NCBI GenBank assembly: GCA_965240325.2
Contig: OZ251230.1
Span: 2,762,667-2,826,666, forward strand
Length of the DNA: 64,000 nt
Origin: Rebecca billardiae RCC1528
Taxonomy: Eukaryota > Protista > Haptophyta
Reading direction: 5' to 3'
This document shows positions 4,720 through 64,000 of this stretch, one piece after another. A program made the position numbers and the translations under genes. Below the pieces are notes generated by a model. It ran no database searches. It was not told where the DNA came from and worked only from the letters and a program-made list of their open reading frames with translations. The first letter of the stretch is position 1, and each line of letters starts with the position of its first letter.

Positions 4720-4817
4720 GGGGCCGGCCGTTGAGAACCCCCGCCGTTTGAAGGCGCAGCCGTCCGGCCGGGTGGTCCGGGACTCACTTTTCTCGCAGGA
4801 TGGCGAGCGGCTCTTGA

Positions 4818-9556: not shown

Positions 9557-9587
9557 TATTATAATAATATACTTATATATATATAAG

Positions 9588-9619
<32 letters not shown>

Positions 9620-9665
9620 CGTCGTCTCTCCCGTCTCTCTCTCTCTCTCTCTCGTCTCTCTCTCT
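9557..9665. repeat. (TA)n and (CT)n microsatellites in an AT-rich intergenic patch
   Basis: Directly visible tatatata and ctctct runs. Confidence 0.9.
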
Positions 9666-9668
9666 ACA

Positions 9669-10616
9669 GGCTCCAGCCACAGTCAGGGACGTCCACTGAC
9701 CCTATGGGGGGGGTGCATTTAGACGAACCCCTGGGAGCCAGGGAGCGATGAGGGTACCAATCGAAAGGTCTCCGGGGCGGCGGACGAAGCCGCAGGTTCA
9801 AAACCGAAGCCGCAGACGATTTCGTATGTTTCCTTGTCCTTGAACGCGTCGTCACAGTCGAACACGGAGGACTCCATCGTGCTGAACTTTTTTTTGGGCT
9901 CCCGGACCGGTCTCTCGCACGATGGAGCGCCGCCGAGCGGGCGAGGAGACGAGACGTCTTGGAGGCCTTGATCCGGGCGCATCCGCTGGTTGGCCGCGGC
10001 ACCCTGTCGCGCTCGCGCCCCGGGTGCACGTTCGTGCACTGAGAGTCACCGATGGGCGAGAAGCTGCTCGTCGACTCGAGCAAGCTGCGCGCTTTCCGCG
10101 TCGAGCTGCTCGCGCCGGCGGCCACATCTCGCGGCGGTGCGGGCGTGCGCATGAGCTTGTCGGCTTCTAGCTGCTCGCGCCCCGGGCCGCGCCGTCAGCT
10201 CGTGGTGCCACGGGTATGCGCACGAGCTCGTGCTTGGCTGCAGCTCCTCAGAGGACTGCCACAGCTGGCTGGCTCAGAGCTTGTTCGCGAGTGCTAAGGT
10301 GCGGCGTGGCCTGCGCGGTGCGCCGCAGCGGTCAATGCGTTGCTCGATCCTGCACTACGCTACGTCTTGACTCGCGAGGGAGGCGCCGATATTGGGGCTG
10401 TGTGCAATGCGTCATGGCCGCCCGGCGCAGAGCCGACGCCGCACGACGCAGCCCTCAGCCAACACCAGCGAACACGGTCTGCTATGCGAATTCTGGCGAG
10501 TTGGGGCCTTATTGAGGCGTATTTGGTCCTTCGATCGGCTGGGGGGAGCCCCCCCCAGACCCCCCCAGAGAGTCTGAATGCACCCCTGCTGGACGTCCCG
10601 GACAGTGACCGGAGCC
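9669..10616. mobile_element. 948-bp non-autonomous TIR DNA element with 4-bp TSD (TACA)
   Basis: Left end GGCTCCAGCCACAGTCAGGGACGTCCA..GGGGTGCATTTAGAC matches the reverse complement of the right end, GGCTCCGGTCACTGTCCGGGACGTCCA..GGGGTGCATTCAGAC. TACA at 9665-9668 and 10617-10620. Confidence 0.8.
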
Positions 10617-44887: not shown

Positions 44888-47800
44888 GATTAATGCAAGG
44901 TGTCGGCCGCACTGATTTCAGGCGGGCTGGCTCCTCGCGCGCCGCACCGCCCGGTGGGTGCAGTCGACGGAGCCAGGGGCTAGGACCAACTTTCAGGGCT
45001 TGCGGGAGCGCACCGAGTGCACCTGCGTGCCCGGCGGCGGCGCGCGGCTGCATATTATATAGTGATTTTCGCGATTAATGCGAGGTCTCGGCCGCACTGA
45101 TTTCAGGCGAGCTGGCTCCTCGCGCGCCGCACCGCCCGGTGGGTGGAGTCGACGGAACCAGGGGTTAGGGCCAACTGTCAGGCCTTGTGGGAGCGCGCCG
45201 AGTGCACCCGCGCGCCCGGCGGCGGCGCGCGGCTGCCTAATATGCTGATTTTCGCGATTAATGCGAGGTCTCGGCCGCGCTGATTTCAGGCGAGCTGGCT
45301 CCTCTCGCGCCGCACCGCCCGGTGGGTGGAGTCGACGGAACCAGGGGTTAGGGCCAACTGTCAGGTCTTGTGGGAGCGCGCCGAGTGCACCCGCGCGCCC
45401 GGCGGCGGCGCGCGGCTGCATAATATATGCTGATTTTCGCGATTAATGCGAGGTCTCGGCCGCACTGATTTCAGGCGAGCTGGCTCCTCGCGCGCCGCAC
45501 CGCCCGGTGGGTGGAGTCGACGGAACCAGGGGCTAGGGCCAACTGTCAGGCCTTGTGGGAGCGCGCCGAGTGCACCCGCGCGCCCGGCGGCGGCGCGCGG
45601 CTGCATATTATCCTGATTTTCGCGATTAATGCGAGGTCTCGGCCGCGCTGATTTCAGGCGAGCTGGCTCCTCGCGCGCCGCACCGCCCGGTGGGTGGAGT
45701 CGACGGAGCCAGGGGCTAGGGCCAACTGTCAGGCCTTGTGGGAGCGCGCCGAGTGCACCCGCGCGCCCGGCGGCGGCGCGCGGCTGCATATTAGAGTGAT
45801 TTTCGCGATTTATGCGAGGTCTCGGCCGCGCTGATTTCAGGCGAGCTGGCTCCTCGCGCGCCGCACCGCCCGGTGGGTGGAGTCGACGGAACCAGGGGCT
45901 AGGGCCAACTGTCAGGCCTTGTGGGAGCGCGCCGAGTGCACCCGCGCGCCCGGCGGCGGCGCGCGGCTGCATATTAGAGTGATTTTCGCGATTAATGCGA
46001 GGTCTTGGCCGCGCTGATTTCAAGCGAGCTGGCTCCTCGCGCGCCGCACCGCCCGGTGCGTGGAGTCGACGGAACCAGGGGCTAGGGCCAACTGTCAGGC
46101 CTTGTGGGAGCGCGCCGAGTGCACCCGCGCGCCCGGCGGCGGCGCGCGGCTGCATATTAGAGTGATTTTCGCGATTAATGCGAGGTCTCGGCCGCGCTGA
46201 TTTCAGGCGAGCTGGCTCCTCGCGCGCCGCACCGCCCGGTGGGTGGAGTCGACGGAACCAGGGGTTAGGGCCAACTGTCAGGCCTTGTGGGAGCGCGCCG
46301 AGTGCACCCGCGCGCCCGGCGGCGGCGCGCGGCTGCCTAATATGCTGATTTTCGCGATTAATGCGAGGTCTCGGCCGCGCTGATTTCAGGCGAGCTGGCT
46401 CCTCGCGCGCCGCACCGCCCGGTGGGTGGAGTCGACGGAACCAGGGGTTAGGGCCAACTGTCAGGCCTTGTGGGAGCGCGCCGAGTGCACCTGCGCGCCC
46501 GGCGGCGGCGCGCGGCTGCATATTATCCTGATTTTCGCGATTAATGCGAGGTCTCGGCCGCGCTGATTTCAGGCGAGCTGGCTCCTCTCGCGCCGCACCG
46601 CCCGGTGGGTGGAGTCGACGGAACCAGGGGTTAGGGCCAACTGTCAGGTCTTGTGGGAGCGCGCCGAGTGCACCTGCGCGCCCGGCGGCGGCGCGCGGCT
46701 GCATATTATCCTGATTTTCGCGATTAATGCGAGGTCTCGGCCGCGCTGATTTCAGGCGAGCTGGCTCCTCTCGCGCCGCACCGCCCGGTGGGTGGAGTCG
46801 ACGGAACCAGGGGCTAGGGCCAACTGTCAGGCCTTGTGGGAGCGCGCCGAGTGCACCCGCGCGCCCGGCGGCGGCGCGCGGCTGCATATTTGAGTGATTT
46901 TCGCGATTTATGCGAGGTCTCGGCCGCGCTGATTTCAGGCGAGCTGGCTCCTCGCGCGCCGCACCGCCCGGTGGGTGGAGTCGACGGAGCCAGGGGTTAG
47001 GGCCAACTGTCAGGCCTTGTGGGAGCGCGCCGAGTGCACCCGCGCGCCCGGCGGCGGCGCGCGGCTGCCTAATATGCTGATTTTCGCGATTGATGCGAGG
47101 TCTCGGCCGCGCTGATTTCAGGCGAGCTGGCTCCTCGCGCGCCGCACCGCCCGGTGGGTGGAGTCGACGGAGCCAGGGGTTAGGGCCAACTGTCAGGCCT
47201 TGTGGGAGCGCGCCGAGTGCACCCGCGCGCCCGGCGGCGGCGCGCGGCTGCCTAATATGCTGATTTTCGCGATTAATGCGAGGTCTCGGCCGCGCTGATT
47301 TCAGGCGAGCTGGCTCCTCTCGCGCCGCACCGCCCGGTGGGTGGAGTCGACGGAACCAGGGGTTAGGGCCAACTGTCAGGTCTTGTGGGAGCGCGCCGAG
47401 TGCACCCGCGCGCCCGGCGGCGGCGCGCGGCTGCATAATATATGCTGATTTTCGCGATTAATGCGAGGTCTCGGCCGCACTGATTTCAGGCGAGCTGGCT
47501 CCTCGCGCGCCGCACCGCCCGGTGGGTGGAGTCGACGGAACCAGGGGCTAGGGCCAACTGTCAGGCCTTGTGGGAGCGCGCCGAGTGCACCCGCGCGCCC
47601 GGCGGCGGCGCGCGGCTGCATATTATCCTGATTTTCGCGATTAATGCGAGGTCTCGGCCGCGCTGATTTCAGGCGAGCTGGCTCCTCTCGCGCCGCACCG
47701 CCCGGTGGGTGGAGTCGACGGAACCAGGGGCTAGGGCCAACTGTCAGGCCTTGTGGGAGCGCGCCGATTGCACCCGCGCGCCCGGCGGCTGCGCGCGGCT

Positions 47801-49069
47801 GCCTATTATTGCGATTTTCGCGATTAATGCGAGAACTCGGCCGCGCTGATTTCAGGCGAGCTGGCTCCTCGCGCGCCGCACCGCCCGGTGGGTGGAGTCG
47901 ACGGAACCAGGGGTTAGGGCCAACTGTCAGGCCTTGTGGGAGCGCGCCGAGTGCACCCGCGCGCCCGGCGGCGGCGCGCGGCTGCATAATATATGCTGAT
48001 TTTCGCGATTAATGCGAGGTCTCGGCCGCGCTGATTTCAGGCGAGCTGGCTCCTCGCGCGCCGCACCGCCCGGTGGGTGGAGTCGACGGAGCCAGGGGTT
48101 AGGGCCAACTGTCAGGCCTTGTGGGAGCGCGCCGAGTGCACCCGCGCGCCCGGCGGCGGCGCGCGGCTGCCTAATATGCTGATTTTCGCGATTAATGCGA
48201 GGTCTCGGCCGCGCTGATTTCAGGCGAGCTGGCTCCTCTCGCGCCGCACCGCCCGGTGGGTGGAGTCGACGGAACCAGGGGCTAGGGCCAACTGTCAGGC
48301 CTTGTGGGAGCGCGCCGATTGCACCCGCGCGCCCGGCGGCTGCGCGCGGCTGCCTATTATTGCGATTTTCGCGATTAATGCGAGAACTCGGCCGCGCTGA
48401 TTTCAGGCGAGCTGGCTCCTCGCGCGCCGCACCGCCCGGTGGGTGGAGTCGACGGAACCAGGGGTTAGGGCCAACTGTCAGGCCTTGTGGGAGCGCGCCG
48501 AGTGCACCCGCGCGCCCGGCGGCGGCGCGCGGCTGCATAATATATGCTGATTTTCGCGATTAATGCGAGGTCTCGGCCGCGCTGATTTCAGGCGAGCTGG
48601 CTCCTCGCGCGCCGCACCGCCCGGTGGGTGGAGTCGACGGAGCCAGGGGTTAGGGCCAACTGTCAGGCCTTGTGGGAGCGCGCCGAGTGCACCCGCGCGC
48701 CCGGCGGCGGCGCGCGGCTGCCTAATATGCTGATTTTCGCGATTAATGCGAGGTCTCGGCCGCGCTGATTTCAGGCGAGCTGGCTCCTCTCGCGCCGCAC
48801 CGCCCGGTGGGTGGAGTCGACGGAACCAGGGGTTAGGGCCAACTGTCAGGTCTTGTGGGAGCGCGCCGAGTGCACCCGCGCGCCCGGCGGCGGCGCGCGG
48901 CTGCATAATATATGCTGATTTTCGCGATTAATGCGAGGTCTCGGCCGCACTGATTTCAGGCGAGCTGGCTCCTCGCGCGCCGCACCGCCCGGTGGGTGGA
49001 GTCGACGGAACCAGGGGCTAGGGCCAACTGTCAGGTCTTGTGGGAGCGCGCCGAGTGCACCCGCGCGCC
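44888..49069. repeat. Subtelomeric satellite, ~23 units of 183/185 bp
   Basis: GATTAATGCGAGGTCTCGGCCGC recurs every 183 or 185 bp. Each unit carries GGGGTTAGGG or GGGGCTAGGG. Confidence 0.98.
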
Positions 49070-49637
49070 TAGAAGTATGTTTTCTCGAGATTGACCGAGC
49101 CAAATTCTCTCAAAATTGGAGGGCCCTTAGCGCTTCCCATTTCCATGGCAGAGCCCAAGTCTCGTTGAAATCGGTTCGGTCAATGTACATTGTACATTCG
49201 GAAATGTACATTGTACATTTGGAATGTACTACATTGTACATTCGGATACATTTGATCATCAGATGTACTGTTGCAATGTACATTCGGATACATTCAGATG
49301 TACAATCAAGCAGTGTACAGAGTGTACAAAGTGTACAAATGTGTACATTCAAAATGTATACAATAGTGTACATTCATATGTACAATCAAGAAGTGTACAA
49401 AGTGTACAATATACCGTCAGAATCTACATTCGGATACATTCAGAGGAATGAGCAAAAACATACAGAGTGTACAGATATGTACAGTCAAAAACGTACTTTC
49501 GCGCCTGCAGTCTCAGAGCACAGCACCGGTCGATGCAGGCCCCGCCCCGCCCCCCCATCTGAAGCCTAGTCCTACTTGACTCTGGTGAGCAGCAACTGGT
49601 GAGAGCAGCTGCTCGTACATACGTCCTAGTTCTGTGC
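49070..49637. repeat. Telomere-junction cassette copy 0 (internally deleted, distally truncated)
   Basis: Starts TAGAAGTATG like copies 1 and 2. Lacks ~589 bp including the 18-mer array and ends at GTTCTGTGC. Confidence 0.9.
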
Positions 49638-49653
49638 TACTGGGTTAGAAGTA

Positions 49654-51695
49654 CACAGTAAAGAAATCGATTTTCGGCGTTACCGTAACCCGTCCGCACT
49701 TCCGCCCAGTGGGGATGCGGGGGAATTGTTTTCATGCCGCGTTCGCGGCACTTCGCGCCGCCACAGTGGAGAAAGATCGGGCCGAAGCCGTTTGAGCATG
49801 GTCGGTTGTGGGCACGCCCATTCGAATCGATGGCGCGCTCCGAGCGGCGGGCATGCGCGCATGTGTGCCGCGAGGGGGGCTGCGAGGCGTCGGCCGGCTT
49901 GCCAAGGCGGTTCCCCGGGGCGGCATCACCCTCGCCCGCCCCTCCTCGCCCACCCTCGCCCCACGGGCGGCCACACGTGACCTGTTAAGATGAGTTCACG
50001 GGAGCCGCACGGCACGCGCGCGGAGAGGCGAGGAAGTGGTGTTTCGCGGAAAAACGCTCTATAGCATTGTGCTCAACCCATGTGGTCACCCGCTCCACAA
50101 GTTTGTACGCCGCCAAACCGCACACAGCGGCCTGAGCAGCTCCCAGACTGAGTTTCGCTCTTGAAGCCTGTTTTTGGGCCAGATCTTGGTGTGGATGTAG
50201 CGCGGCGAGGAGGCGCCGGGCGCGCGCCCGAGCTGCGTGCTGGCACTCGCCATGACCCATAGGCATCGTCCGTCGCGAACGACCCGGCTCGCCTCGACCT
50301 CTCCGACCCGCCGGGCAGCCACGACCGAGCACGGCACGACAATGGCCAAACCGGGAGGCTTCTCAGACCGCGCGGGATGGGCATAGGCGCGAGAGAGGGC
50401 GCCCAGCGCGCTCTTGAGATGCACAGGAGCACGCACTGATGCGTATGGAACCATCCCATCACGATCGCCCCGACCTGGCGCGCCCTATCTGGCCCGTCAG
50501 GCTGCCCGCGCCGCCGCCGCCGCGCCACGCCGCCACCACGGGCGCCGCCGCATCACGGGCACATGGGTAAGTCTGTATTCAACAAATACAGAATTTCCGG
50601 TGCGGCCCTCTGTTGGGCGGCAAGGTCGATCTGGTCGACACCTGCCACGCGGCATGGGCCACGGCGCGGCGAGGTGGCGGCTGGCGCACCGCGGCGCGGG
50701 CGGGATGGCTCGAGGACACCACCGCCCCGCCTCCCACGCCGCGCCGTGCGCGTGCGCCGTGCTCTCGTCGCGTACCGAATTTCCTGCGGCGAGCGACAAC
50801 ACACAGCGCGACCATGCCATCGCGCGACGAGCTGCGTTCAGCTCGGCGATTTGTCGTATTTGTTGAATACATGCGGGTACGAATCCGACGCACGACGCCC
50901 TCGACGCACACGTCGAGAGCCACGCGCGCGGCGTGGACTGGCACGCGACGCGGAGATGGCGGGCGCGGTGCCGCGGGCGCGCGACTGGTCTAGAACAGCA
51001 CAATGAAGCGCGGGACGGCGCCGCGCGCGTGGGCTCGCTGCCGTCTCCTCGCAGTCGAATATTTCTGTGCACCCTCCTACCAGGTCAGTCGACCGACTTG
51101 CACGCGGCATGCGAGCACTGCGTGCGGGGAGGAGTGTGACATGGCAGGCTGTGGCGAGGTGGATGGCCGTGCAGGAGTATGCTAGGAAGGGCCGCTCCCG
51201 CGCTCGCGCGGTGCCTCGCGCACGCCTCGTCGAGGACGAGCGTGTTTGAATGGCTCCGGGGAGGCCTGAGACTTCGCTTGTTCACAGCAGCGCGCGACAG
51301 GTGCACACAACGGAGGTGACGACCAGGCACTCCGGCGAGGGCGGCTGTGCTGGCAGCAGACTGCATTCGGAGTAAGATGCGCCATCTTACGCGCCGCTTC
51401 GCCTCGCTGCATCGCCGCACTGAGCAGCAGGGCTCCACGCTCACGAATCTCACGAATGGCTCACCACGAGCTACGTGACCGGCCAGCCGCGTGCAACCCG
51501 GCGAGGCAGAGAGGGGCGGAGGGATGGGGAGGCTGGGTGGAATGTTGCAGTCCCATGCCCGGGGCACTCGTCAGGCGCCTGCGCGGCCACCGTAGCGTCT
51601 TCTGTGCGCTCGTGCGGCCCGCGAGAGAATTTCCCCGAAAATCGGCTCGTGTCGGACGGGTTACGGTAACGATAATCCCGTTTTTGTTCACTGTG
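49654..51695 (+). mobile_element. 2,042-bp non-autonomous CACAGT-ended DNA transposon, TSD TA
   Basis: 43-bp imperfect TIRs (CACAGT...CGTTACCGTAACCCGTCCG). TA at 49652-53 and 51696-97. The empty site GAAG-TA-TGTT is seen at ~49072 and ~54193. No credible ORF. Confidence 0.93.
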
Positions 51696-51700
51696 TATGT

Positions 51701-51814
51701 TTTCTCGAGATTGACCGAGCCAAATTCTCTCAAAATTGGAGGGCCCTTAGCCCTTCCCATTTCCATGGCAGAGCCCAAGTCTCGTTGAAATCAGTTCGGT
51801 CAATCTCGAGAAAT
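51701..51814. repeat. Inverted-repeat block with 18-bp arms TTTCTCGAGATTGACCGA (also 54201-54314; partial at 49081-49184)
   Basis: The arms are exact reverse complements around a ~78-bp spacer. Confidence 0.93.
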
Positions 51815-51852
51815 TCTCATTTTAGTACTGACGACCCTAACCACCACCCTAA

Positions 51853-52135
51853 CCCTAACCCTTACCTGCGCCCTAACCCTTACCTGCGCCCTAACCCTTA
51901 CCTGCGCCCTAACCCTTACCTGCGCCCTAACCCTTACCTGCGCCCTAACCCTTACCTGCGCCCTAACCCTTACCTGCGCCCTAACCCTTACCAGCGCCCT
52001 AACCCTTACCTGCGCCCTAACCCTTACCTGCGCCCTAACCCTTACCTGCGCCCTAACCCTTACCTGCGCCCTAACCCTTACCTGCGCCCTAACCCTTACC
52101 TGCGCCCTAACCCTTACCTGCGCCCTAACCCTTAC
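51853..52135. repeat. 18-bp telomere-like array (CCCTAACCCTTACCTGCG), ~15 units, inverted relative to the telomere
   Basis: Directly visible tandem repeat. Confidence 0.97.
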
Positions 52136-52145
52136 CCTCACCCTC

Positions 52146-52700
52146 ACATTGTACATTTGGAATGTACATTGTACATTTGGAATGTACATTGTACATTTGG
52201 AATGTACATTGTACATTCGGAAGTGTACATTGTACATTTGGAATGTACATTGTACATTCGGAAGTGTACATTGTACATTTGGAATGTAGTACATTGTACA
52301 TTCGGAAATGTACTTTGTACATTTGGAATGTACATTGTACATTCGGAAGTGTACATTGTACATTTGGAATGTAGTACATTGTACATTTGGAATGTACATT
52401 GTACATTCGGAAATGTACATTGTACATTTGGAATGTACTACATTGTACATTCGGATACATTTGATCATCATGCAGATGTACTGTTGCAATGTACATTCGG
52501 ATAAATTCAGATATGTACAATCAATCAGTGTACAGAGTGTACAAAGTGTACAAATGTGTACATTCAAAATGTATACAATAGTGTACATTCATATGTACAA
52601 TCAAGAAGTGTACAAAGTGTACAATATACCGTCACAATCTACATTCGGATACATTCAGAGGAATAAGCGAAAACATACAGAGTGTACAGATATGTACAGT
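52146..52700. repeat. AT-rich TGTACA(TT)-based repeat tract (also 60755-61305 and 49184-49485)
   Basis: TGTACATTTGGAATGTACAT units that decay distally. Confidence 0.93.
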
Positions 52701-53255
52701 CAAAAACGTACTTTCGCGCCTGCAGTCTCAGAGCACAGCACCGGTCGATGCAGGCCCCGCCCCGCCCCCCCATCTGAAGCCTAGTCCTACTTGACTCTGG
52801 TGAGCAGCAACTGGTGAGAGCAGCTGCTCGTACATACGTCCTAGTTCTGTGCGGGGAGTATCCCTCAATAATGTGGTTGGCATCAGCACCAGCCAGTCGA
52901 TCTCGAGTTGCAGCTGTGAGCTGTCAATCATCGATGACGAGACCTCGATGATGACAACGACAGTTGATAGGGCAAATCAAGCGCATGGCTGCTAAGCAGA
53001 GTGGCTGTGGCAGAATAGTATGCTGCGGTGCGGACGAGTGCAGCACCTGTCAAAGCTCAGCTCAAGCGCTGAGCACCTGTCAAAGCTGCCCCCGCCCCGC
53101 CCCCCCATCTTGCTCTTGGCTCAACCTGCACAGGGGGCGCGCACAGAGCAGCACCCATTGCATGCCACAGCTCAAGCAAGCAGAGGGGACGATTGCTCTC
53201 CAGCCTTGTCAACGTGCGCAAGCGGATCCTTGACCGCCCATCTCAGAATGATTTG

Positions 53256-54179
53256 CCCAGCTCGGCAGAGTCGGCCGGCCCAGAGCCTCCTGGGCCGCCA
53301 GACACGCCGCCCCAGCCGGCCGCCACCGGGTCGAAACGGCCGCGGCTGGTAACCTCACTCAGGGTAGATGTCTCTTTGGGCCTAACCTCACCACTGCGCG
53401 CCCAGTGCGCAGCCGGCGCGCAGCCTGGCGCCAGCCCTCCCAGCCCAGCTGGAGCCGGCCTGGGAGGCTCTGGGCAGCCCAGCTCGGCCCACTCGGCCGG
53501 CCCAGAGCCTCCTGGGCCGCCAAACACGCCGCCCCAGCCGGCCCCCACTGGGCCGAAACGGCCGCGGCTGGTAACCTCACCCAGGGTAGATGTCTCTTTG
53601 GGCCTAACCTCACCACTGCGCGCCCAGTGCGCAGCCGGCGCGCAGCCTGGCGCCAGCCCTCCCAGCCCAGCTGGAGCCGGCCTGGGAGGCTCTGGGCAGC
53701 CCAGCTCGGCCCACTCGGCCGGCCCAGAGCCTCCTGGGCCGCCAAACACGCCGCCCCAGCCGGCCCCCACTGGGCCGAAACGGCCGCGGCTGGTAACCTC
53801 ACCCAGGGTAGATGTCTCTTTGGGCCTAACCTCACCACTGCGCGCCCAGTGCGCAGCCGGCGCGCAGCCTGGCGCCAGCCCTCCCAGCCCAGCTGGAGCC
53901 GGCCTGGGAGGCTCTGGGCAGCCCAGCTCGGCCCACTCGGCCGGCCCAGAGCCTCCTGGGCCGCCAAACACGCCGCCCCAGCCGGCCCCCACTGGGCCGA
54001 AACGGCCGCGGCTGGTAACCTCACCCAGGGTAGATGTCTCTTTGGGCCTAACCTCACCACTGCGCGCCCAGTGCGCAGCCGGTGCGCAGCCTGGCGCCAG
54101 CCCTCCCAGCCCAGCTGGAGCCGGCCTGGGAGGCTCTGGGCAGCCCAGCTCGGCCCACTCGGCCGGCCCAGAGCCTCCT
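53256..54179. repeat. 222-bp tandem array, ~4.1 units
   Basis: CAGAGCCTCC at 53281, 53503, 53725, 53947 and 54169. Confidence 0.96.
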
Positions 54180-54624
54180 AGGTTTAGGGTTAGAAGTATG
54201 TTTTCTCGAGATTGACCGAGCCAAATTCTCTCAAAATTGGAGGGCCCTTAGCCCTTCCCATTTCCATGGCAGAGCCCAAGTCTCGTTGAAATCAGTTCGG
54301 TCAATCTCGAGAAATTCTCCACAGTAAAGAAATCAATTTTCGGCGTTACCGTAACCCGTCCGGCGGCCCGCCCAGTGGGCGGAGCGATGTCCTGTTTTTT
54401 CACCCTTCGGCGCCGCCGCTCGCGGAAGACCAGTGGACAGCTTCGGGCCGAGCGTCGTTCAAGCGACGAGCCGAGCGCCCCGCCCGTCGACCCGATCGCC
54501 AGGTATCGTGGCCGTACCGCGCGGCGTACGCGGCGCGCTGCGGCCGCGCGCGATGATGACCCATGCCACAGTGCCCCAACCCCCCGCGTAGGCACCACGG
54601 AGCCCGTCACCAACCTCTCCTTCG

Positions 54625-55617
54625 ATGGTCGAGCGGTACAACGGTGCGCGCGCCGCGAGACTCGACCCGCGCGCGCTCGCGCGCGCGCGCGCGGCGAGGC
54701 GGCGGGCGGATGCGAGATATCTTTCTATAGCATTTCGCCCAACTCACCCACGAACCACGCCCGCATGTTTGTACGCCGTCAATCCGCACACAGCGTCCCC
54801 TGCAGCCCGTGGACTGATTTTCGCTCTTGCAACTGACACGCCGCCGCGCCCCGCGGCGCGCACGGCGCGCGCAGGAGAGGAGGGCCGGAAGCGACCCAGG
54901 GCGCCGACCGCCGCGAAGAAGGTGGTGAAGAAGGCCAAGCTGGGCAGCTCGCCGCCGGCGACCGGCCCCCCGCGCCTCGCGCCGATGCCGATCACCATGG
55001 AGATCGACCTCGCGCCGTGGGTCTCGGACTTCCTCTACATGATGTGGAAGGCGGCGGCGTCGACGTGCCGCGCGGATGGGCGGCACTTCAAGGAGTACCG
55101 GGCGGACCCGATGCCGTGGCAGGTGTTCAAGCACCTGATGACGTGGCTGCTCGAGGGCACGGAGTCGTACATCATGGCGGACCTCGACCCGCGCATCTCG
55201 TACTCGGAGACGGCGGCGCGGCGCACGCACACGGTGCGGCTCACGGACATGCAGCACCTCTCGCGCCGGCTTGGCTTCGGCCAGCTGAAGGCGGACGCGT
55301 CGGTGGCGACGGCGCGGCAGAGCGCGAAGGGCAACCTGAACGCGGTGATCGAGGTGGAGGCGGTGCACGTCACGCGGCGCAACCCGGCGACGTGGCGCAA
55401 GCGCGAGTCGGTGACCGTGCGAGTCTGGCTGGCCGCGGTCAACGCGACGGGGCGCGTGTCGCTGCCGGAGGCGCGGTACACGGCGGCGGAGGAGGCGGCC
55501 ATCACGACGTACATGCGCTCGCTCACGGTGCAGGGCAAGGCGGCGGGCAAGCCGATCAACCCGCAGATGCACCGCGCGCTCCGCCAGGTGGCCAAGGCGC
55601 AGCGCCGCTCGCAGTGA
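54625..55617 (+). CDS. Transposon ORF1 of unknown function (basic NLS-like stretch + ~200-aa globular region); probable intron 54644-54874
   Basis: Strong GC3 bias from 54875 and the basic stretch RKRPR..KKVVKKAK. Donor G|GTGCGC, CTGAC branch-like site and acceptor GCGCAG are phase-compatible. Confidence 0.7.
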   Translation: MVERYNGARAARLDPRALARARAARRRADARYLSIAFRPTHPRTTPACLYAVNPHTASPAARGLIFALATDTPPRPAARTARAGEEGRKRPRAPTAAKKVVKKAKLGSSPPATGPPRLAPMPITMEIDLAPWVSDFLYMMWKAAASTCRADGRHFKEYRADPMPWQVFKHLMTWLLEGTESYIMADLDPRISYSETAARRTHTVRLTDMQHLSRRLGFGQLKADASVATARQSAKGNLNAVIEVEAVHVTRRNPATWRKRESVTVRVWLAAVNATGRVSLPEARYTAAEEAAITTYMRSLTVQGKAAGKPINPQMHRALRQVAKAQRRSQ

Positions 55618-56096
55618 GCGGCAGCGCGCCGCGCGCGCCCGGCGCGCCGCGCGCGCCGCGCGCGCCGCGCGTGCCGCACGCGCCGAGCGAGGGCGGCGGC
55701 GCGGGCGGCGGCGCGGGCGGCGATGGCGGCGGCGGCGGCGGCGGCGGCGGCGCTGGCGGCGGCGGTGGCGCTCACGGCGGCCGAGGCGGCGGCGGCGCTG
55801 GCGGCGGCGCTGGCGGCGGTGCTGATGACGGTGGTGGCGGCGGCGGCGGCGCTCGCACTGCCGCGCCCGAGCTCGCGCGCGGCGCGGCTGACACGGGCGC
55901 GGCTCACGTCGGCGCGGCTGACGACGAGCACGATGCTGGCGGCGCAGACGGCGCGGCCGGCGCAGGCGGCGCAGGCGCGCGCGGCGCGGTCGGAGCGGCA
56001 GCGGCCACAGCGCCTCCGCCGCGGGCGCTCGCGGCAGCCGAGGACGACGGCTCGCCGCTCGGCCCGCTACTCGTTGTCCGGCTCAGCTTGAGCGGG

Positions 56097-59000
56097 ATGC
56101 GGGGTTGGACCAAGCGGGCGCCGCCGTCGCTCCAGCGGCGAGATCATCTCGTGCGCGCTCGTGCGCAGCTGCAGGCGACTCGCGCGGCCGCGGGCGGCGA
56201 GCGCGCGGCGGTGGCGGCGCCCTTCCCGGCGCCGCTCGCCGCCGCTCGCGGCGGCGCGCTCGTGCCGCTGGCCGATGCCGCGCGCGCGGGCTCGCCCGCG
56301 CCGCAGCCCGCGGCGCGCCGGACGCCGCGCGCGCCGCGCGCGCAGCCCGCCGCGCCGCCGCGCGTGCTCGTCGTGTCGACGATTGGGTCGGTGCCGTCGC
56401 CCGCCACGCCGGACGGCGCGGCGGCGGGTGCAGCGACAAGAGCCGCTGCCGCCTCCGCGTCACGCACCGTGCGCACCACCGCGCTCGCGCCGATCGTCCC
56501 GCACATCACGCGCCGCGCTCTCGCCGACGCGACCAACGCGGCGGCGAGCAGCGACGCCTGGCTGCAGCGGGAGGCGCAGTCGACGGTCGAACTCAACGAG
56601 GAGAACCGGCGGCTGCACGCGCGCAACTACGAGCTCGCGCGGACCGAGCAGGCGTCGCTCCGCCTGCTCGCGCGCACCCGCGCCGAGAAGACCGATCTCC
56701 TCGCCCAGAACGACGAGCTGCGCGCCGAAGTCGAGCAGCAGCGCGAGCGCGCGGACGCGCGCGCGGAGGCGGCAAAGAAGTCGCAGCGCAAGCTCGCCGC
56801 CGCTCGCGCCGCCGCTCGCGCCGCTCGCACCGGGCTGCTGCGTCGTGAGGGGCACGCGCATAACGACGGTCTCCGCATCGCGCAGGTCGAGGAGGAAAGC
56901 CTCGAGCAGGCGGAGCAGATCGACGAGCTCAACGCGCAGATCCTCGAGCAGTCGGAGGAGATCGATGCGCTCAACGCGCGGCGCCTCGAGCGCGAGGAGG
57001 AGTTCGCCGAGCTCGAGGCGAATTTTTTGAGGTTCGAGGCCGTCGGCGAGGAGCACGTGGGCGCGCTCGAGCGCGAGATCGATTGGCAGGGCGCGCAGCT
57101 CGCGGCGCTCGAGCGGCGCGACAAGGAGCGCAAGGAGCAGCGCAGCTCGGCCGCGGTCAAAGCTGCGGCGCGAGAGCGCGAGGCGGCCGCGCTGGCGCGC
57201 GCGGATGCCGAGGCCGCGAGCGCCAAGGTGGCCGCGCTCAAGAAGGAGAGGACGCGGCTGGCGGACGCGAAGCGCGCGAGCGAGGCTCGCCGCGCTGCGA
57301 GCAGTGCGCGCTTGTGCTTACTCAACCCCGCCCTGCGCCAGCGCGGCCGTCCGACCGCCGCCGGGCGCGACGATGCGAGCAGCGGCAGCGGCTGCGACGG
57401 CGGCGACTCGGACAGCAGCAACGACGGCGACGGCCCCGGCGGCGGCTTGAACAAAGCAGCGGAACGCGTGAGGCGGCACCGCGCGCGGGCCGACATCCGC
57501 GCCGTGAGCGATCGCTTCGGCGGCGGCGGCGACTCGGCGCTCGACTCGCTCCTCTTCGCCAACGGCGGCCTCGCCGCGCGCCTCAAGGGCCAGCCGCACT
57601 TTGACAAGTTCGTCCACGGCATCCGGCGGGAGCACTCGCGGAAGGTGGGGGAGACGCTGTTCGCGCTCGACAGGACGACGGACCTCTTCATCCACGCCAA
57701 CCTGTCGACGCGCTCTGTGCACCTGACTCGCGAGGTGATGGGCTTCGAGTACTCGCTCACCACGGGCGAGCGCAAGCAGCGCGCCGTCGACGGCGTGCCG
57801 GTGCCGCTCCCGCTGTCGTGCTACATCATCACCAAGGAGGTGAGACGGCGGCTCGGCGCGCTCGGCGTGCGCCTCGCGGACGGCACCGAGGGCAAGGCGG
57901 CCGTGATGGACTGCACGCTCGCGCTGTGCCGCCTGCTCGTGGAGGCGCGCGCGCTCTCGGGCTCGAACCCGCTCGACGACGTCGGCGGCCCCGTCTTCGC
58001 GCTCAAGTTCGACTCGGCGGAGATGGGCCGATCGATCCACATGATGCTCGCCAGCATCTCGTACCCGATGGTCGGCGTGGGCGCGCAGTCGGAGGGCCAG
58101 CACAAGACGATCGGCGTCGCGGTGGGCAAGGACGAGATGATCGGCACGGTGCTCGACGCCAACCGCGAGGAGGTGGAGCGCCTCTGCCTCCGTCGGCGCA
58201 TCCGCCTGCCCAAGTGCGCGCGCAAGAAGCTGTCCGAGGTCAGCTCGCGCGACAAAGCGGCCGGGCTCGCGTTCGAGAAGCTGATGTGCGACCTGTGCGC
58301 CAAGGTGGAGGAGGGCGGCTGCAGCGGCGGCTGCTGCGAGGAGTGGGACGAGCTGGTGGCGCAGATGATCGCGGTCGCCGACGACGCGGCGAAGCGCAAG
58401 CTGCTCGGGCTCACGACGCACACCGCCAAGTTCGGCTCCATCGACTACGTCGACGCAGTCTCCGACCTCGTCACGCCGGGCTACGAGCCGACGCCGAGGA
58501 ACATCGTGAGCATGTACCACTCGGCGCACGTGCCGTTCCCGGGCGATCCGGAGGGCCCGGTCAAGTGCCCGTGCTGCTCGTACTGGGCGCCCAGCCACGC
58601 GCAGGCGCGCAAGGACCGCGCGGCGGACGACGCGCGCTTCGCCAAGGACGCGCTCGCGCGGCAGCAGCGCGGGTCGTCGCACGCTGGCCAGCTCTACGCG
58701 CCGCAGCTGCCGATCCCGATGACCAACGTGATCACGCCGATCATGCACCTCCTCGAGAACGCGTTCAGCTACGCGCACACGCACGCGATGTGGAACTACC
58801 CGGCGACTGTCATCTCGGGGCTCAGCGACTTCACCGAGGCGAAGAGGACGCGCCTGCTCAACTGCGTGCGGTACGACGCCGTCGAGATCCTGCAGACGAT
58901 GGGCATCCGCGCTGCGAAGCTGCCGCCGCGGCGCGGAGACGACGTGAGCGAGCCGAAGTTCCTCTTCACCGAGGTGCGCACGCTCATCAGCTCGCTGCCC

Positions 59001-59870
59001 TTCATCTTCTACGTCGTGGCGCTGTGCGCGCACGTCCACGACCTCGTGCGCCGCGAGCGCGCGGCCGCCGGCGCCGCAGCGCCGCCGCCGCCGCCGCCGC
59101 CTGCGGCAGCGCCGAGGCCCGCTGCGCGGCCGGAGCCGTACCAGGCCCTGATGGACGCGCTCGCGGACGAGTCGGACTCGGAGGACGAGGACGACGCGCC
59201 GGCCGCGCGCGCAAGGTCGGACGCGCAGGCAGCGCTCGAGATGGAGGACGACGACTTCACGCAGGCGTTGAAGGTGTGCCGCATGCTCCAGGCGTACGGC
59301 GAGTTCGAGATGGCCGTCTCGTCCACCGACTACCGCCACGACGACCGTGCTGAGCGCGAGGCCCACGCTGCTCGCGTCGCCGAGGTCGGCCGCGAGTTCC
59401 TCAAGCGGCGCGGCCAGGCGCTGCCGGCGAGTGAGCACGCGTGCTCGGTGTACGATGTGGTGATCCTGCACAAGCTGCCGGCGGACCTGCGCCGGTGGGG
59501 GCACATCATCGTGCACGGGCGCGAGGACGGCCAGGAGAAGAAGAACCAGGAGGCCAAGGCCATCTCTCGCCGGTGCGTGCGGCGCCTGACCAAGTTCGTC
59601 TCGTACGTGAAGAAGAACGGCACGCGCGTGGACGTGCAGCGCACGATGTCGCTGCAGATCGCCGAGCGGGTCGCGCTCAAGGAGCAGGTGCAGCTGAGGA
59701 TGGGCACGTACGTCAAGCACCTCGCCGTGCACGCCAGCGGCCACTGGCGGCAGGACCAGCTCGACCAAGGCTACTCGGTCAAGCGCGCGCGCTCGCAGTT
59801 CACGAGCGAGCTCGAGGAGCAGATCGCCAAGCGCGGCAAGCACGACATGGACGCGTGGATGAAGCGTTGA
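56097..59870 (+). CDS. Transposase: long coiled coil followed by a RAG1/Transib-like DDE core (start uncertain; may be spliced to ORF1)
   Basis: FALKFD (Asp codon 58011), IAVADDAAKRKLLGL (58380), PIMHLLEN (His 58746) and YDVVILHKLPADLRRWGHI..EDGQEKKN (Glu 59535) parallel the RAG1 D600, D708, H795 and E962 regions. The frame is uninterrupted. Confidence 0.8.
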   Translation: MRGWTKRAPPSLQRRDHLVRARAQLQATRAAAGGERAAVAAPFPAPLAAARGGALVPLADAARAGSPAPQPAARRTPRAPRAQPAAPPRVLVVSTIGSVPSPATPDGAAAGAATRAAAASASRTVRTTALAPIVPHITRRALADATNAAASSDAWLQREAQSTVELNEENRRLHARNYELARTEQASLRLLARTRAEKTDLLAQNDELRAEVEQQRERADARAEAAKKSQRKLAAARAAARAARTGLLRREGHAHNDGLRIAQVEEESLEQAEQIDELNAQILEQSEEIDALNARRLEREEEFAELEANFLRFEAVGEEHVGALEREIDWQGAQLAALERRDKERKEQRSSAAVKAAAREREAAALARADAEAASAKVAALKKERTRLADAKRASEARRAASSARLCLLNPALRQRGRPTAAGRDDASSGSGCDGGDSDSSNDGDGPGGGLNKAAERVRRHRARADIRAVSDRFGGGGDSALDSLLFANGGLAARLKGQPHFDKFVHGIRREHSRKVGETLFALDRTTDLFIHANLSTRSVHLTREVMGFEYSLTTGERKQRAVDGVPVPLPLSCYIITKEVRRRLGALGVRLADGTEGKAAVMDCTLALCRLLVEARALSGSNPLDDVGGPVFALKFDSAEMGRSIHMMLASISYPMVGVGAQSEGQHKTIGVAVGKDEMIGTVLDANREEVERLCLRRRIRLPKCARKKLSEVSSRDKAAGLAFEKLMCDLCAKVEEGGCSGGCCEEWDELVAQMIAVADDAAKRKLLGLTTHTAKFGSIDYVDAVSDLVTPGYEPTPRNIVSMYHSAHVPFPGDPEGPVKCPCCSYWAPSHAQARKDRAADDARFAKDALARQQRGSSHAGQLYAPQLPIPMTNVITPIMHLLENAFSYAHTHAMWNYPATVISGLSDFTEAKRTRLLNCVRYDAVEILQTMGIRAAKLPPRRGDDVSEPKFLFTEVRTLISSLPFIFYVVALCAHVHDLVRRERAAAGAAAPPPPPPPAAAPRPAARPEPYQALMDALADESDSEDEDDAPAARARSDAQAALEMEDDDFTQALKVCRMLQAYGEFEMAVSSTDYRHDDRAEREAHAARVAEVGREFLKRRGQALPASEHACSVYDVVILHKLPADLRRWGHIIVHGREDGQEKKNQEAKAISRRCVRRLTKFVSYVKKNGTRVDVQRTMSLQIAERVALKEQVQLRMGTYVKHLAVHASGHWRQDQLDQGYSVKRARSQFTSELEEQIAKRGKHDMDAWMKR

Positions 59871-60317
59871 GCGATCGGTGAGCGCGCCGCCGCGCCACCG
59901 GCCGCAGGACGCGCGCGCGCGCGCGCGCACGTCCTCATGGCCGCGCCGCCCCACCCGCGCCTGCGCACCTACCTTACACGCTTTGCCGTACAGGACGAGC
60001 ACGGGCCAGCAGTGCGCCGCTCGACCAGTGACGCGTCCGACTGCCGGCCGACGGCTCGGCGCGCGCGCGCGCGCGCGCGATCGCGCGAGCAGCTGGTCGA
60101 CCTGATGCCGGCGCTGATGGGCAGCGCCAGCTCGCTCGCACTCAGGCCCCTGACGGTGCCCATAGTGCGCGCTCGTCCGCGGCATAGGGGCCGTCAAAGG
60201 GGCACTTCGCAGAAAGCTGTAATAAAACCTGTGAATTTCGGACGGTTTGCTGTAACGATTTAATTGTTTTTGTTCACTGTGTCATTTTAGTACTGGCGAC
60301 CCTAACCACCACCCTAA

Positions 60318-60745
60318 CCCTAACCCTTACCTGCGCCCTAACCCTTACCTGCGCCCTAACCCTTACCTGCGCCCTAACCCTTACCTGCGCCCTAACCCTT
60401 ACCAGCGCCCTAACCCTTACCTGCGCCCTAACCCTTACCTGCGCCCTAACCCTTACCTGCGCCCTAACCCTTACCTGCGCCCTAACCCTTACCTGCGCCC
60501 TAACCCTTACCTGCGCCCTAACCCTTACCTGCGCCCTAACCCTTACCTGCGCCCTAACCCTTACCTGCGCCCTAACCCTTACCTGCGCCCTAACCCTTAC
60601 CAGCGCCCTAACCCTTACCTGCGCCCTAACCCTTACCTGCGCCCTAACCCTTACCTGCGCCCTAACCCTTACCTGCGCCCTAACCCTTACCTGCGCCCTA
60701 ACCCTTACCTGCGCCCTAACCCTTACCTGCGCCCTAACCCTTACC
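60318..60745. repeat. 18-bp telomere-like array, ~23 units
   Basis: Same unit as 51853-52135, but the array is 144 bp longer. Confidence 0.97.
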
Positions 60746-61860
60746 CTCACCCTCACATTGTACATTTGGAATGTACATTGTACATTTGGAATGTACATTG
60801 TACATTTGGAATGTACATTGTACATTCGGAAGTGTACATTGTACATTTGGAATGTACATTGTACATTCGGAAGTGTACATTGTACATTTGGAATGTAGTA
60901 CATTGTACATTCGGAAATGTACTTTGTACATTTGGAATGTACATTGTACATTCGGAAGTGTACATTGTACATTTGGAATGTAGTACATTGTACATTTGGA
61001 ATGTACATTGTACATTCGGAAATGTACATTGTACATTTGGAATGTACTACATTGTACATTCGGATACATTTGATCATCAGATGTACTGTTGCAATGTACA
61101 TTCGGATAAATTCAGATATGTACAATCAATCAGTGTACAGAGTGTACAAAGTGTACAAATGTGTACATTCAAAATGTATACAATAGTGTACATTCATATG
61201 TACAATCAAGAAGTGTACAAAGTGTACAATATACCGTCACAATCTACATTCGGATACATTCAGAGGAATAAGCGAAAACATACAGAGTGTACAGATATGT
61301 ACAGTCAAAAACGTACTTTCGCGCCTGCAGTCTCAGAGCACAGCACCGGTCGATGCAGGCCCCGCCCCGCCCCCCCATCTGAAGCCTAGTCCTACTTGAC
61401 TCTGGTGAGCAGCAACTGGTGAGAGCAGCTGCTCGTACATACGTCCTAGTTCTGTGCGGGGAGTATCCCTCAATAATGTGGTTGGCATCAGCACCAGTCA
61501 GTCGATCTCGAGTTGCAGCTGTGAGCTGTCAATCATCGATGACGAGACCTCGATGATGACAACGACAGTTGATAGGGCAAATCAAGCGCATGGCTGCTAA
61601 GCAGAGTGGCTGTGGCAGAATAGTATGCTGCGGTGCGGACGAGTGCAGCACCTGTCAAAGCTCAGCTCAAGCGCTGAGCACCTGTCAAAGCTGCCCCCGC
61701 CCCGCCCCCCCATCTTGCTCTTGGCTCAACCTGCACAGGGGGCGCGCACAGAGCAGCACCCATTGCATGCCACAGCTCAAGCAAGCAGAGGGGACGATTG
61801 CTCTCCAGCCTTGTCAACGTGCGCAAGCGGATCCTTGACCGCCCATCTCAGAATGATTTG

Positions 61861-62624
61861 CCCAGCTCGGCAGAGTCGGCCGGCCCAGAGCCTCCTGGGC
61901 CGCCAGACACGCCGCCCCAGCCGGCCGCCACCGGGTCGAAACGGCCGCGGCTGGTAACCTCACTCAGGGTAGATGTCTCTTTGGGCCTAACCTCACCACT
62001 GCGCGCCCAGTGCGCAGCCGGCGCGCAGCCTGGCGCCAGCCCTCCCAGCCCAGCTGGAGCCGGCCTGGGAGGCTCTGGGCAGCCCAGCTCGGCCCACTCG
62101 GCCGGCCCAGAGCCTCCTGGGCCGCCAAACACGCCGCCCCAGCCGGCCCCCACTGGGCCGAAACGGCCGCGGCTGGTAACCTCACCCAGGGTAGATGTCT
62201 CTTTGGGCCTAACCTCACCACTGCGCGCCCAGTGCGCAGCCGGCGCGCAGCCTGGCGCCAGCCCTCCCAGCCCAGCTGGAGCCGGCCTGGGAGGCTCTGG
62301 GCAGCCCAGCTCGGCCCACTCGGCCGGCCCAGAGCCTCCTGGGCCGCCAAACACGCCGCCCCAGCCGGCCCCCACTGGGCCGAAACGGCCGCGGCTGGTA
62401 ACCTCACCCAGGGTAGATGTCTCTTTGGGCCTAACCTCACCACTGCGCGCCCAGTGCGCAGCCGGCGCGCAGCCTGGCGCCAGCCCTCCCAGCCCAGCTG
62501 GAGCCGGCCTGGGAGGCTCTGGGCAGCCCAGCTCGGCCCACTCGGCCGGCCCAGAGCCTCCTGGGCCGCCAAACACGCCGCCCCAGCCGGCCCCCACTGG
62601 GCCGAAACGGCCGCGGCTGGTAAC
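61861..62624. repeat. 222-bp tandem array, ~3.4 units, truncated by the telomere
   Basis: Same unit as 53256-54179. Breaks at CTGGTAAC|TAGG. Confidence 0.96.
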
Positions 62625-62783
62625 TAGGTTAGGGTTAGGTTAGGTTAGGGTTAGGGTTAGGGTTAGGGTTAGGGTTAGGGTTAGGGTTAGGGTTAGGGTT
62701 AGGGTTAGGGTTAGGGTTAGGGGTTAGGGTTAGGGTTAGGGTTAGGGTTAGGGTTAGGGTTAGGGTTAGGGTTAGGGTTAGGG

Positions 62784-62824
<41 letters not shown>

Positions 62825-63423
62825 GGTTAGGGTTAGGGTTAGGGGTTAGGGTTAGGGTTAGGGGTTAGGGGTTAGGGTTAGGGTTAGGGGTTAGGGTTAG
62901 GGTTAGGTTAGGGTTAGGGTTAGGGTTAGGGTTAGGGTTAGGGTTAGGGTTAGGGTTAGGGTTAGGGGTTAGGGTTAGGGTTAGGGTTAGGGTTAGGGTT
63001 AGGGTTAGGGTTAGGGGTTAGGGTTAGGGTTAGGGTTAGGGTTAGGGTTAGGGTTAGGGTTAGGGTTAGGGTTAGGGTTAGGGTTAGGGTTAGGGTTAGG
63101 GTTAGGGTTAGGGTTAGGGTTAGGGTTAGGGTTAGGGTTAGGGTTAGGGTTAGGGTTAGGGTTAGGGTTAGGGTTAGGGTTAGGGTTAGGGTTAGGGTTA
63201 GGGTTAGGGTTAGGGTTAGGGTTAGGGTTAGGGTTAGGGTTAGGGTTAGGGTTAGGGTTAGGGTTAGGGTTAGGGTTAGGGTTAGGGTTAGGGTTAGGGT
63301 TAGGGTTAGGGTTAGGGTTAGGGTTAGGGTTAGGGTTAGGGTTAGGGTTAGGGTTAGGGTTAGGGTTAGGGTTAGGGTTAGGGTTAGGGTTAGGGTTAGG
63401 GTTAGGGTTAGGGTTAGGGTTAG

Positions 63424-63461
<38 letters not shown>

Positions 63462-63570
63462 GGTTAGGGGTTAGGGTTAGGGTTAGGGTTAGGGTTAGGG
63501 TTAGGGTTAGGGTTAGGGTTAGGGTTAGGGGTTAGGGGTTAGGGTTAGGGGTTAGGGGTTAGGGTTAGGG

Positions 63571-63611
<41 letters not shown>

Positions 63612-64000
63612 GGTTAGGGTTAGGGTTAGGGTTAGGGTTAGGGTTAGGGTTAGGGTTAGGGTTAGGGTTAGGGTTAGGGTTAGGGTTAGGGTTAGGGTTA
63701 GGGGTTAGGGTTAGGGTTAGGGTTAGGGTTAGGGTTAGGGTTAGGGTTAGGGTTAGGGTTAGGGGTTAGGGTTAGGGTTAGGGTTAGGGTTAGGGTTAGG
63801 GTTAGGGTTAGGGTTAGGGTTAGGGTTAGGGTTAGGGTTAGGGTTAGGGTTAGGGTTAGGGTTAGGGGTTAGGGTTAGGGTTAGGGTTAGGGTTAGGGTT
63901 AGGGTTAGGGTTAGGGTTAGGGTTAGGGTTAGGGTAGGGGTTAGGGTTAGGGTTAGGGTTAGGGTTAGGGTTAGGGTTAGGGTTAGGGTTAGGGTTAGGG
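62625..64000 (+). repeat. Telomere (TTAGGG)n
   Basis: About 1.38 kb of TTAGGG to the window end, with occasional TTAGG, TTAGGGG and TTTAGGG. Confidence 0.99.

Follow-up and report, generated by a model that had tools for sequence, protein, structure and literature searches.

A telomere-restricted, non-coding repeat unit with one exact proximal start at the chromosome ends of the alga Rebecca billardiae

To our knowledge, terminal retroelements that work beside telomerase are found in few lineages (rotifers, some fungi, silkworm, Giardia and Chlorella), and they bear on the relationship between telomerase and retroelements. We analysed a 64,000-nucleotide (nt) stretch of the haptophyte-like alga Rebecca billardiae RCC1528 (assembly GCA_965240325.2, contig OZ251230.1, positions 2,762,667 to 2,826,666 of the forward strand; hereafter the window), which is the right end of contig C13 in a genome of 72 Mb, 41 contigs and ~75% GC. 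The window carries three head-to-tail copies of a terminal unit that we termed U, for which the closest known system is MoTeR2/MoTeR1 of Magnaporthe. Like U, MoTeR2/MoTeR1 of Magnaporthe oryzae and the FoTeRs of Fusarium are strictly telomeric and have their 5' end towards the tip (PMC7367193, PMC12857005). MoTeRs share with U the formation of head-to-tail arrays with half to many telomere repeats between the copies, as well as frequent 5' (distal) truncations that are healed by telomerase from in-register seeds; among the healed truncations most exceptions have a terminal C, the same bias as the one we found for U, and the elements have been shown experimentally to be mobile (PMC7367193). Furthermore, MoTeR2 is non-coding, as is U, and has only its termini in common with its coding partner, and MoTeRs, like U, coexist with active telomerase (PMC7367193, PMC12857005). 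The two systems differ in that MoTeRs insert into telomere repeats by means of a reverse transcriptase with a restriction enzyme-like endonuclease and have a long telomere-like 5' tract (PMC7367193, PMC12857005), whereas U is often joined to unique DNA with 0-4 telomeric bases in between, has telomere-like arrays in inverted (C-strand) orientation just inside its conserved hairpin, has no coding partner that we could find, and lives in an alga rather than a fungus.

The HeT-A, TART and TAHRE elements of Drosophila resemble U in forming head-to-tail terminal arrays with a fixed proximal 3' end and variable 5' truncation, and HeT-A is without a reverse transcriptase of its own and depends on one in trans, which is a further likeness. 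Unlike U, the Drosophila elements take the place of telomerase, show poly(A) at their junctions and encode Gag, while the U joints are free of A/T runs. When U was compared with the MoTeR2 and HeT-A type of element, it was found to share the restriction to termini in a single orientation, the exact proximal terminus, the variable distal truncation and the head-to-tail arrangement.

Read towards the tip, the window contains a 183-bp satellite, U copy 1, filler, U copy 2, filler, U copy 3 and the telomere. The octamer TAGAAGTA occurs in the 64 kb only at 49070, 49646 and 54191 (0.1 sites expected), and each of these sites is a U start, in agreement with the original prediction of three head-to-tail copies with a common start. 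The predicted copy ends were likewise correct; 49637 lies in the unique part of the unit, 54178/54179 in a 222-bp array and 62624 in the same array in another phase. The apparent cassette span of ~4.5 or 8.4 kb had to be replaced by a true U of ~2.5 kb. Copies 2 and 3 look long because one cut-and-paste transposon with terminal inverted repeats (TIRs), overlooked before, sits in each; we termed these E1 and E2. Without the inserts the three copies measure 568 bp, ~2,490 bp and ~2,470 bp. A full U consists of five parts, namely a start module of ~160 nt (module A), an 18-bp array, a GTACA-rich minisatellite, a unique segment of ~800 bp and an array of 222-bp units. The 18-bp unit, CCCTAACCCTTACCTGCG, is C-strand telomere-like and hence inverted relative to the telomere.

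All features of the window are given on the plus strand. The satellite (44888..49069, 22.8 copies) is an older subtelomeric layer that was cut mid-unit at 49069 and capped directly by U; it also precedes U at the left end of contig C12 (L004), cut at another position. Copy 1 (49070..49637) comprises module A to about U position 115, an internal deletion from there into the GTACA minisatellite, reaching the end of that array, and part of the unique segment, where it is truncated. We rejected splicing as the origin of this deletion, its boundaries (with AAT microhomology) fitting GT-AG on neither strand. Copy 1 is followed by the filler TACTGGGT (49638..49645), a sloppy telomere-like seed that ends in the GGGT register. 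Copy 2 (49646..54179) has U positions 1-8 at 49646-49653 and resumes after E1 at 51696; it contains the module A hairpin (~51702-51812), 15.8 copies of the 18-bp unit (51853-52136), the GTACA minisatellite (52146-52455), the unique part (52456-53254) and 4.2 copies of the 222-bp unit (53255-54179). After a second filler of ~11 bases, (T)AGGTTTAGGGT (54180..54190), copy 3 (54191..62624) starts with module A at 54191-54319, is interrupted by E2 and resumes at 60282, with 23.8 copies of the 18-bp unit (60318-60745), the minisatellite (60755-61064), the unique part (61065-61859) and 3.4 copies of the 222-bp unit (61860-62624). The terminal telomere, (TTAGGG)n in the G-rich strand (62625..64000), begins TAGGTTAGGG right after ...GGTAAC.

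We then examined the whole genome, the census covering the U-bearing ends (25 further ends were fetched) out of 82 contig ends. BLAST matched module A to 41 places, all within a few kb of contig ends. The 15-mer TAGAAGTATGTTTTC, with which U begins, had 40 exact matches against 0 for the reversed control, and all 40 lay at 25 contig ends and one scaffold join and pointed outwards, with every match at a contig start on the minus strand and every match at a contig end on the plus strand. The apparent exception, 45 kb inside contig C31, is beside 440 bp of telomere and a 200-N gap and was therefore counted as the scaffold join. A covariance model of module A returned the same places and no others (150 of 1,252 first-look candidates scored). 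Hence the expectation that the unit would be strictly terminal and of one polarity was borne out, and the same fixed start with a variable end, foreseen for other chromosome ends, was seen at 25 or more of them, with up to three U starts per end; U is thus not peculiar to the end in the window, and the genome search revealed no internal dispersal with target-site duplications or Helitron-type ends. A Helitron or other interstitial transposon was rejected as the nature of U, there being no internal copies, no target-site duplications and no second terminus. A distal terminus of U does not exist, each copy ending in telomere, another U or captured DNA. Finally, a DNA run of a related strain, X1, was compared with positions 48900-51850 and contained the satellite and E1-like sequence. 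In one X1 contig, U is broken off at its position 310 (window 49379), and 11 bases further on a new U starts at exactly 49070. This U-U joint is independent, but it comes from the short contigs of a related strain and is not a check of the RCC1528 joints.

The proximal start of U was found to be exact. With the breaks marked by slashes, the joints in the window read cgcgcc/TAGAAG, gtgc/TACTGGGT/TAGAAG, cctcc/TAGGTTTAGGGT/TAGAAG and, at the telomere, gtaac/TAGGTTAGGG..., and the letters originally reported were confirmed at all four. The sequence upstream of U is different at nearly every copy, and ~40 different flanks abut the identical first base. These flanks include unique GC-rich and often coding-like DNA, the 183-bp satellite at two cut positions, a 197-bp satellite, another subtelomeric family (L009) and earlier U copies cut anywhere. 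The use of one exact base at ~40 unrelated flanks indicates a physically or enzymatically defined donor terminus rather than homology. Between flank and start there are 0-24 telomere-like bases (none in 11 joints, 1-4 in 27 and more in 3). The base at -1 is T in 30 of 41 joints (background 15%, p = 5e-17), and G is found at -2 in 26/41 and at -3 in 27/41, so that the joint register reads ...GG(G)T/TAGAAG. Where a new telomere tract begins at a U truncation, it uses G/T microhomology if there is any and otherwise starts TAGG, often TAGGTTAGGG. Since U and new telomere seeds both begin with TAG, U starts in the same register as a telomerase round. The additions that start with TAG are preceded by C in 16 of 20 distinct cases (p = 7e-5). 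The earlier claim that every break is C/TA therefore stands as a strong bias for TAG starts; as a rule it fails, as many joints begin with G or GG after another base.

Three of the joints deserve separate description. At the left ends of C14 and C29 (L005 and L010), a ~197-bp satellite is cut at the same position of its unit (...GATGCCCCAG), and the caps are of different U subfamilies, type II at L005 and type I at L010, with GGGT and GGT in between, respectively. The common cut could be either a favoured seed site used twice or U conversion after a duplication. The U-telomere joint at the left end of C12 (L004, original ~2070-2085) reads ...ACCACGACCCTAACCCTAACC/GTCGTGGTTAGGG..., and its first 8 bases past the break are reverse-complementary to the array immediately before it, suggesting that the inverted array folded back and so became the seed of a telomere.

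The distal end of U, in contrast to its start, is variable, as had been proposed. Truncation points were spread over all parts of the unit, with 9 in module A, 17 in the CCCTAA-type array, 5 in the GTACA minisatellite, 5 in the unique part and 4 in the 222-bp array. The terminal copies had a median of 269 bp, and 17 of the 21 were shorter than 600 bp (p = 8e-8 against uniform truncation of a 2.47-kb unit). The copy at L009, on a contig that does not reach the telomere, continues for at least 2.6 kb into further repeats. Very short copies were followed by a new start at four ends: a 34-nt copy and AGGT at L008, a 36-nt copy and (T)AGGGGT at L015, a 91-nt copy and TTGGGT at L010, and a 133-nt copy with a direct restart at L014. 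The 34- and 36-nt copies end within the first arm of the hairpin stem (U positions 13-38), towards its distal side. No micro-abortive copies (TAGAAG of 6-14 nt) were found within the telomere tracts of 26 ends. The excess of short copies and the restarts are better accounted for by abortive synthesis than by an erosion that repeatedly came within tens of bases of the joint.

U positions 13-123 can form a long, partly branched hairpin (z = -4.7 as minus-sense and -4.8 as plus-sense RNA). In addition to the main form of module A, we found a subfamily A', which starts TAGAAGGAGG and occurs at the right end of C30 and as a 45-nt piece at the left end of C18, and a subfamily A'', which starts TAGAGTAAGG at the right end of C33; both are preceded by c/TAGGT. 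The stem is kept in A, A' and A'' with six pairs in which both sides have changed (0-1 of 500 shuffles reached the observed values), and the loop is nearly invariant. The share of cells that pair is 95% in the minus sense and 86% in the plus sense. The bodies beyond module A differ between the subfamilies (L016, L018 and L009), and CCCTAA-type motifs lie 20-40 nt past the hairpin in each. A shared terminal module with different bodies resembles the shared 3' tails of short and long interspersed nuclear elements or the MoTeR1/2 pairs, and a hairpin that is conserved beside the terminus while the bodies differ usually marks an RNA 3' end recognised by a reverse transcriptase. Module A itself has two main subfamilies. 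In arrays with a clear type I copy, type I is followed by type II at L003, L006, L007 and L014; at L015 an intermediate copy precedes type II, and L008 has the reverse of the type I-type II order. A search of metagenomes with the most conserved 33-mer of the hairpin loop gave 0 relatives.

The unit was non-coding, as predicted; its open reading frames (ORFs) were derived from repeats only, and none had a Pfam match above the cut-off. Sub-threshold microRNA-like matches in Rfam were discarded, as they fell on the palindromic GTACA repeats only. A single TERT gene is present, on C24, and U coexists with TTAGGG tracts of 1-3 kb. The genome has 55 matches to RVT_1, all of them at least 60 kb from U-bearing ends except for three on contig C40. 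These three (C40:6-6678, minus strand) are tandem ORFs of 503-1161 aa, ~3.3 kb apart at the start of the small contig, which may be a tandem or terminal retroelement array; BLAST and the covariance model found no match to module A on C40. We found no literature on haptophyte subtelomeres or on haptophyte telomerase RNA.

The anatomy of U, its exclusively terminal location, its exact start, the junction register, the length skew and the conserved hairpin are seen directly. The reading to which we lean, at about even confidence, is that U is added to chromosome 3' ends by an RNA-templated, telomerase-like process, as in MoTeR2, HeT-A or Athena, for which we infer an RNA intermediate and an enzyme. 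In this model a minus-strand RNA, read from the tip inwards, would end in ...CAUACUUCUA, often with ACCC from upstream telomeric bases, and would carry the long conserved hairpin 12 nt from its 3' end. The primer would be the 3' end of the G-rich strand at a short, eroded or broken chromosome end, which would pair with the RNA through a few telomeric bases (..GGT/TAG) or not at all, and the first bases added would always be TAGAAGTATG.... Synthesis would often abort, chiefly where it meets the hairpin or the array whose template strand is G-rich, and would be followed by TTAGGG repeats made by telomerase or by another round of U, so that layers would accumulate head to tail, all with the same proximal start but with distal ends that vary. 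The copying might be done by TERT itself or by a reverse transcriptase that acts in trans. In the minus strand the 18-bp array reads CGCAGGUAAGGGUUAGGG, which is prone to form G-quadruplexes, and this could explain the many stops there. Judged from sequence, U behaves like a non-autonomous, telomere-specific retroelement and may be a variant of that kind.

Several observations weigh against RNA-templated addition. No coding element that shares the U terminus was found in the genome by BLAST, the 15-mer search or the covariance model, no RVT_1 match lies near any U-bearing end, and an Rfam scan of both strands of U at E <= 5 detected neither a hammerhead nor a telomerase RNA. The U joints show no poly(A)-type run, and no intron-loss signature was seen. 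With 6 single-sided changes in the main stem staying paired in the minus sense against 2 in the plus sense, the indication that it is the minus strand that folds is weak, and the structure used for this comparison had itself been derived from that strand. Moreover, the joint at 54179 of the window recurs at the left end of C29 (L010) with one extra TTAGGG, and at the right end of C37 (L017) a block of 2.5-kb flank, U and telomere is duplicated. A 613-bp gene fragment captured at the left end of C7 (L001) is sense on the G strand, whereas a simple template switch onto its mRNA would have left it the other way round.

RNA-templated addition, if true, would show the healing of breaks inside genes and satellites in a haptophyte-like alga, and the ~40 natural junctions would record the start-site choice of telomerase, TAG after C. 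It would also make directly askable which enzyme copies U, TERT or a transposon reverse transcriptase, in a near telomere-to-telomere algal genome in which nearly all of the tips examined carry U, the U joints obey the rules of new telomere seeds and a reverse transcriptase of U's own was not found. A special form of this reading, which we regard as rather improbable, is that U is a parasite or auxiliary template of telomerase, with TERT taking up the 3' region of the U RNA (hairpin, 12-nt single strand and CUA[ACCC]) in place of its normal template, so that a round would start with TAG and continue for tens to thousands of bases. Telomerase RNA has a template and a template-boundary helix, and the likeness lies in a strong helix at a fixed short distance from the copied single strand. 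The stretch of U that would be copied starts with TAG, the first bases of new telomere seeds, and CCCUAA-type motifs lie beside the helix. Unlike telomerase RNA, U has no recognisable pseudoknot or CR4/5, would be copied for hundreds to thousands of bases, and exists as terminal copies only, with no gene. Were this form true, U would be a retroelement without coding sequence that telomerase mobilises and that serves to rebuild broken ends.

An alternative that we consider unlikely, though it has evidence of its own, is that U spread between ends at the DNA level, much as yeast Y' does, through recombination, break-induced replication or end-joining. Uncapped ends might be ligated to a terminal fragment of U and telomere whose cut end is defined, or short telomerase seeds might invade the telomere/U boundary of another end. 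Yeast Y' and Chlamydomonas Sultan-type repeats are, like U, telomere-adjacent at many ends, have short telomeric tracts between tandem copies and are exchanged between ends; they spread by homologous recombination as whole units with shared boundaries, whereas U joins arbitrary sequences at one exact base and most of its copies are short and truncated. Blocks and joints common to different ends are indeed present, namely the recurring joint of the window, the same satellite flank at the left ends of C14 and C29 and the C37 duplication, and the whole joints common to ends together with this duplication indicate that DNA-level copying operates too. The capture of the sense-oriented fragment of C14:817 kb between two U copies also favours exchange of DNA, and if TAG is counted as telomeric, 3-7 nt of microhomology are possible at every joint. 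However, homology long enough for strand invasion was not found, 11/41 joints having no telomeric base and most having 1-4, and 0-4 nt of microhomology cannot give one exact base at ~40 flanks, since joints made by invasion or microhomology should scatter. Break-induced replication copies the donor to its tip, and neither the excess of very short copies nor the 34-36-nt restarts would be expected from it, a cut-and-ligated fragment would not amplify, and the hairpin conserved by compensatory changes across differing bodies is left unexplained. Recombination of the Y' type accounts for the shared joints but not for the exact start, and on the evidence of the junctions homology-driven invasion appears to be ruled out as the main process. 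If DNA-based spread were true after all, U would still be an unusually clean case of layered end repair.

The original prediction of mobilisation in trans had pointed to endonuclease-less Penelope-like elements (PLEs) of the Athena/Coprina type and had called for a search of the genome for a PLE reverse transcriptase with the same terminus; such an element, encoded elsewhere, would mobilise U through a shared reverse-complement telomeric 3' end. Athena/Coprina PLEs and Terminons resemble U in being restricted to termini, in attaching to the G-rich strand in telomeric register and in having a proximal 3' end and distal truncation; endonuclease-less PLEs have been described as using reverse-complement telomeric repeats for their attachment to G-rich overhangs (PMC8557442). 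Thus the polarity fits, U being attached to G-strand ends in a fixed telomeric register, and the three RVT_1 ORFs of the unplaced contig C40 could be seen as candidates. Unlike U, these elements have as their defining features a PLE reverse transcriptase and a hammerhead with reverse-complement repeats beside it (PMC8557442). U has no ORF for a PLE-type reverse transcriptase, and the requested search by BLAST and covariance model yielded no ORF-bearing element with module A or the U terminus; C40 is without a module A match, and the hammerhead is lacking on either strand at the threshold given above. The terminus of U itself is CUA only, any longer telomeric complementarity coming from whatever is upstream. 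We therefore regard this explanation as improbable. That U is a passive subtelomeric duplicon or an assembly artefact is the least probable explanation, since, hard as subtelomeres are to assemble and although one copy lies at the 200-N scaffold join of C31, ~40 distinct flank/start joints with different upstream and identical downstream sequence were assembled independently at 25 ends, the X1 contig of an independent run has a further U-U joint at the same base, and a duplicon would have proximal flanks common to its copies, whereas these differ.

Two of the ends that bear on DNA-level copying have further features. At the right end of C37 (L017), 2671-4232 and 6735-10000 carry an identical array of 2.5-kb unique flank, 972-bp U and telomere twice, the first being followed by ~590 bp of interstitial telomere; the repeat is either a terminal duplication or an assembly artefact. 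At the left end of C7 (L001), positions 4563-5173 on the minus strand hold the 613-bp copy, 99% identical to a single-copy gene stretch at C14:817382-817992, between a truncated U and the next U start with microhomology of 2 nt and 1 nt at its ends. It is internal DNA or complementary DNA captured at a chromosome end. Between a truncated U and the telomere, the same end has at 2096-2716 the initial ~620 bp of a retroelement that is ~7.2 kb long and has direct repeats of 617 bp (e.g. C7:3674261-3681528). We considered a precise joining of the long terminal repeat (LTR) to this end as a special event and rejected it in favour of an ordinary insertion that was later cut ~620 bp in and healed at TGGT; the telomere is seeded at a TGGT common to the retroelement.

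The transposons within U are foreign to it. E1 (49654..51695, plus strand) is a non-autonomous TIR transposon of 2,042 bp, CACAGTAAAG...CACTGTG, inserted in copy 2 at TA, U positions 7-8, which is duplicated (2 bp). E2 (54320..60281, plus strand) is a TIR transposon of 5,962 bp with the same ends, CACAGTAAAG...CACTGTG, a long ORF at 55017-59870, and the 2-bp duplicated target TC, U positions 128-129, in module A of copy 3. E1 and E2 are of one family and lie symmetrically ~4 nt outside the two feet of the module A hairpin. An unrelated 1.9-kb TIR element (TAGCCTGGTCC...GGACCAGGCTA, with a 7-bp duplication TTAGAAG) at the left end of C17 (L008) is within 1-2 bases of the E1 site, and the foot of the hairpin looks like an insertion hot spot. 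What first appeared to be a 9-nt U copy at the C17 end is really a single U start split by this transposon, with TTAGAAG as the 7-bp duplication. Other inserts within U are a 494-bp insert and the retroelement LTR at L001, a 1.57-kb repeat at L016 and a 166-bp element at L018 (5376-5541); the last has more than 25 dispersed genomic copies with 99% identity and is probably a recently active miniature inverted-repeat transposable element.

A second subtelomeric family, termed V, is composed of ~700-bp tandem units; it points outwards as U does and occupies a more internal position at several ends. It was found at the right end of C30 (L018, 5342-8721) and at C14:18425-22320, C37:4733-10601, C36:4140-7106, C29:18861-28652, C23:4397-7501, C33:1597-14442 and C11:3074791-3077192, and at the left end of C25 it was cut and then capped by U. 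Finally, the left end of C17 (L008, original 1248-1479) contains a 232-bp block of (AACTTT)-like repeats with 23% GC inside its TTAGGG tract.

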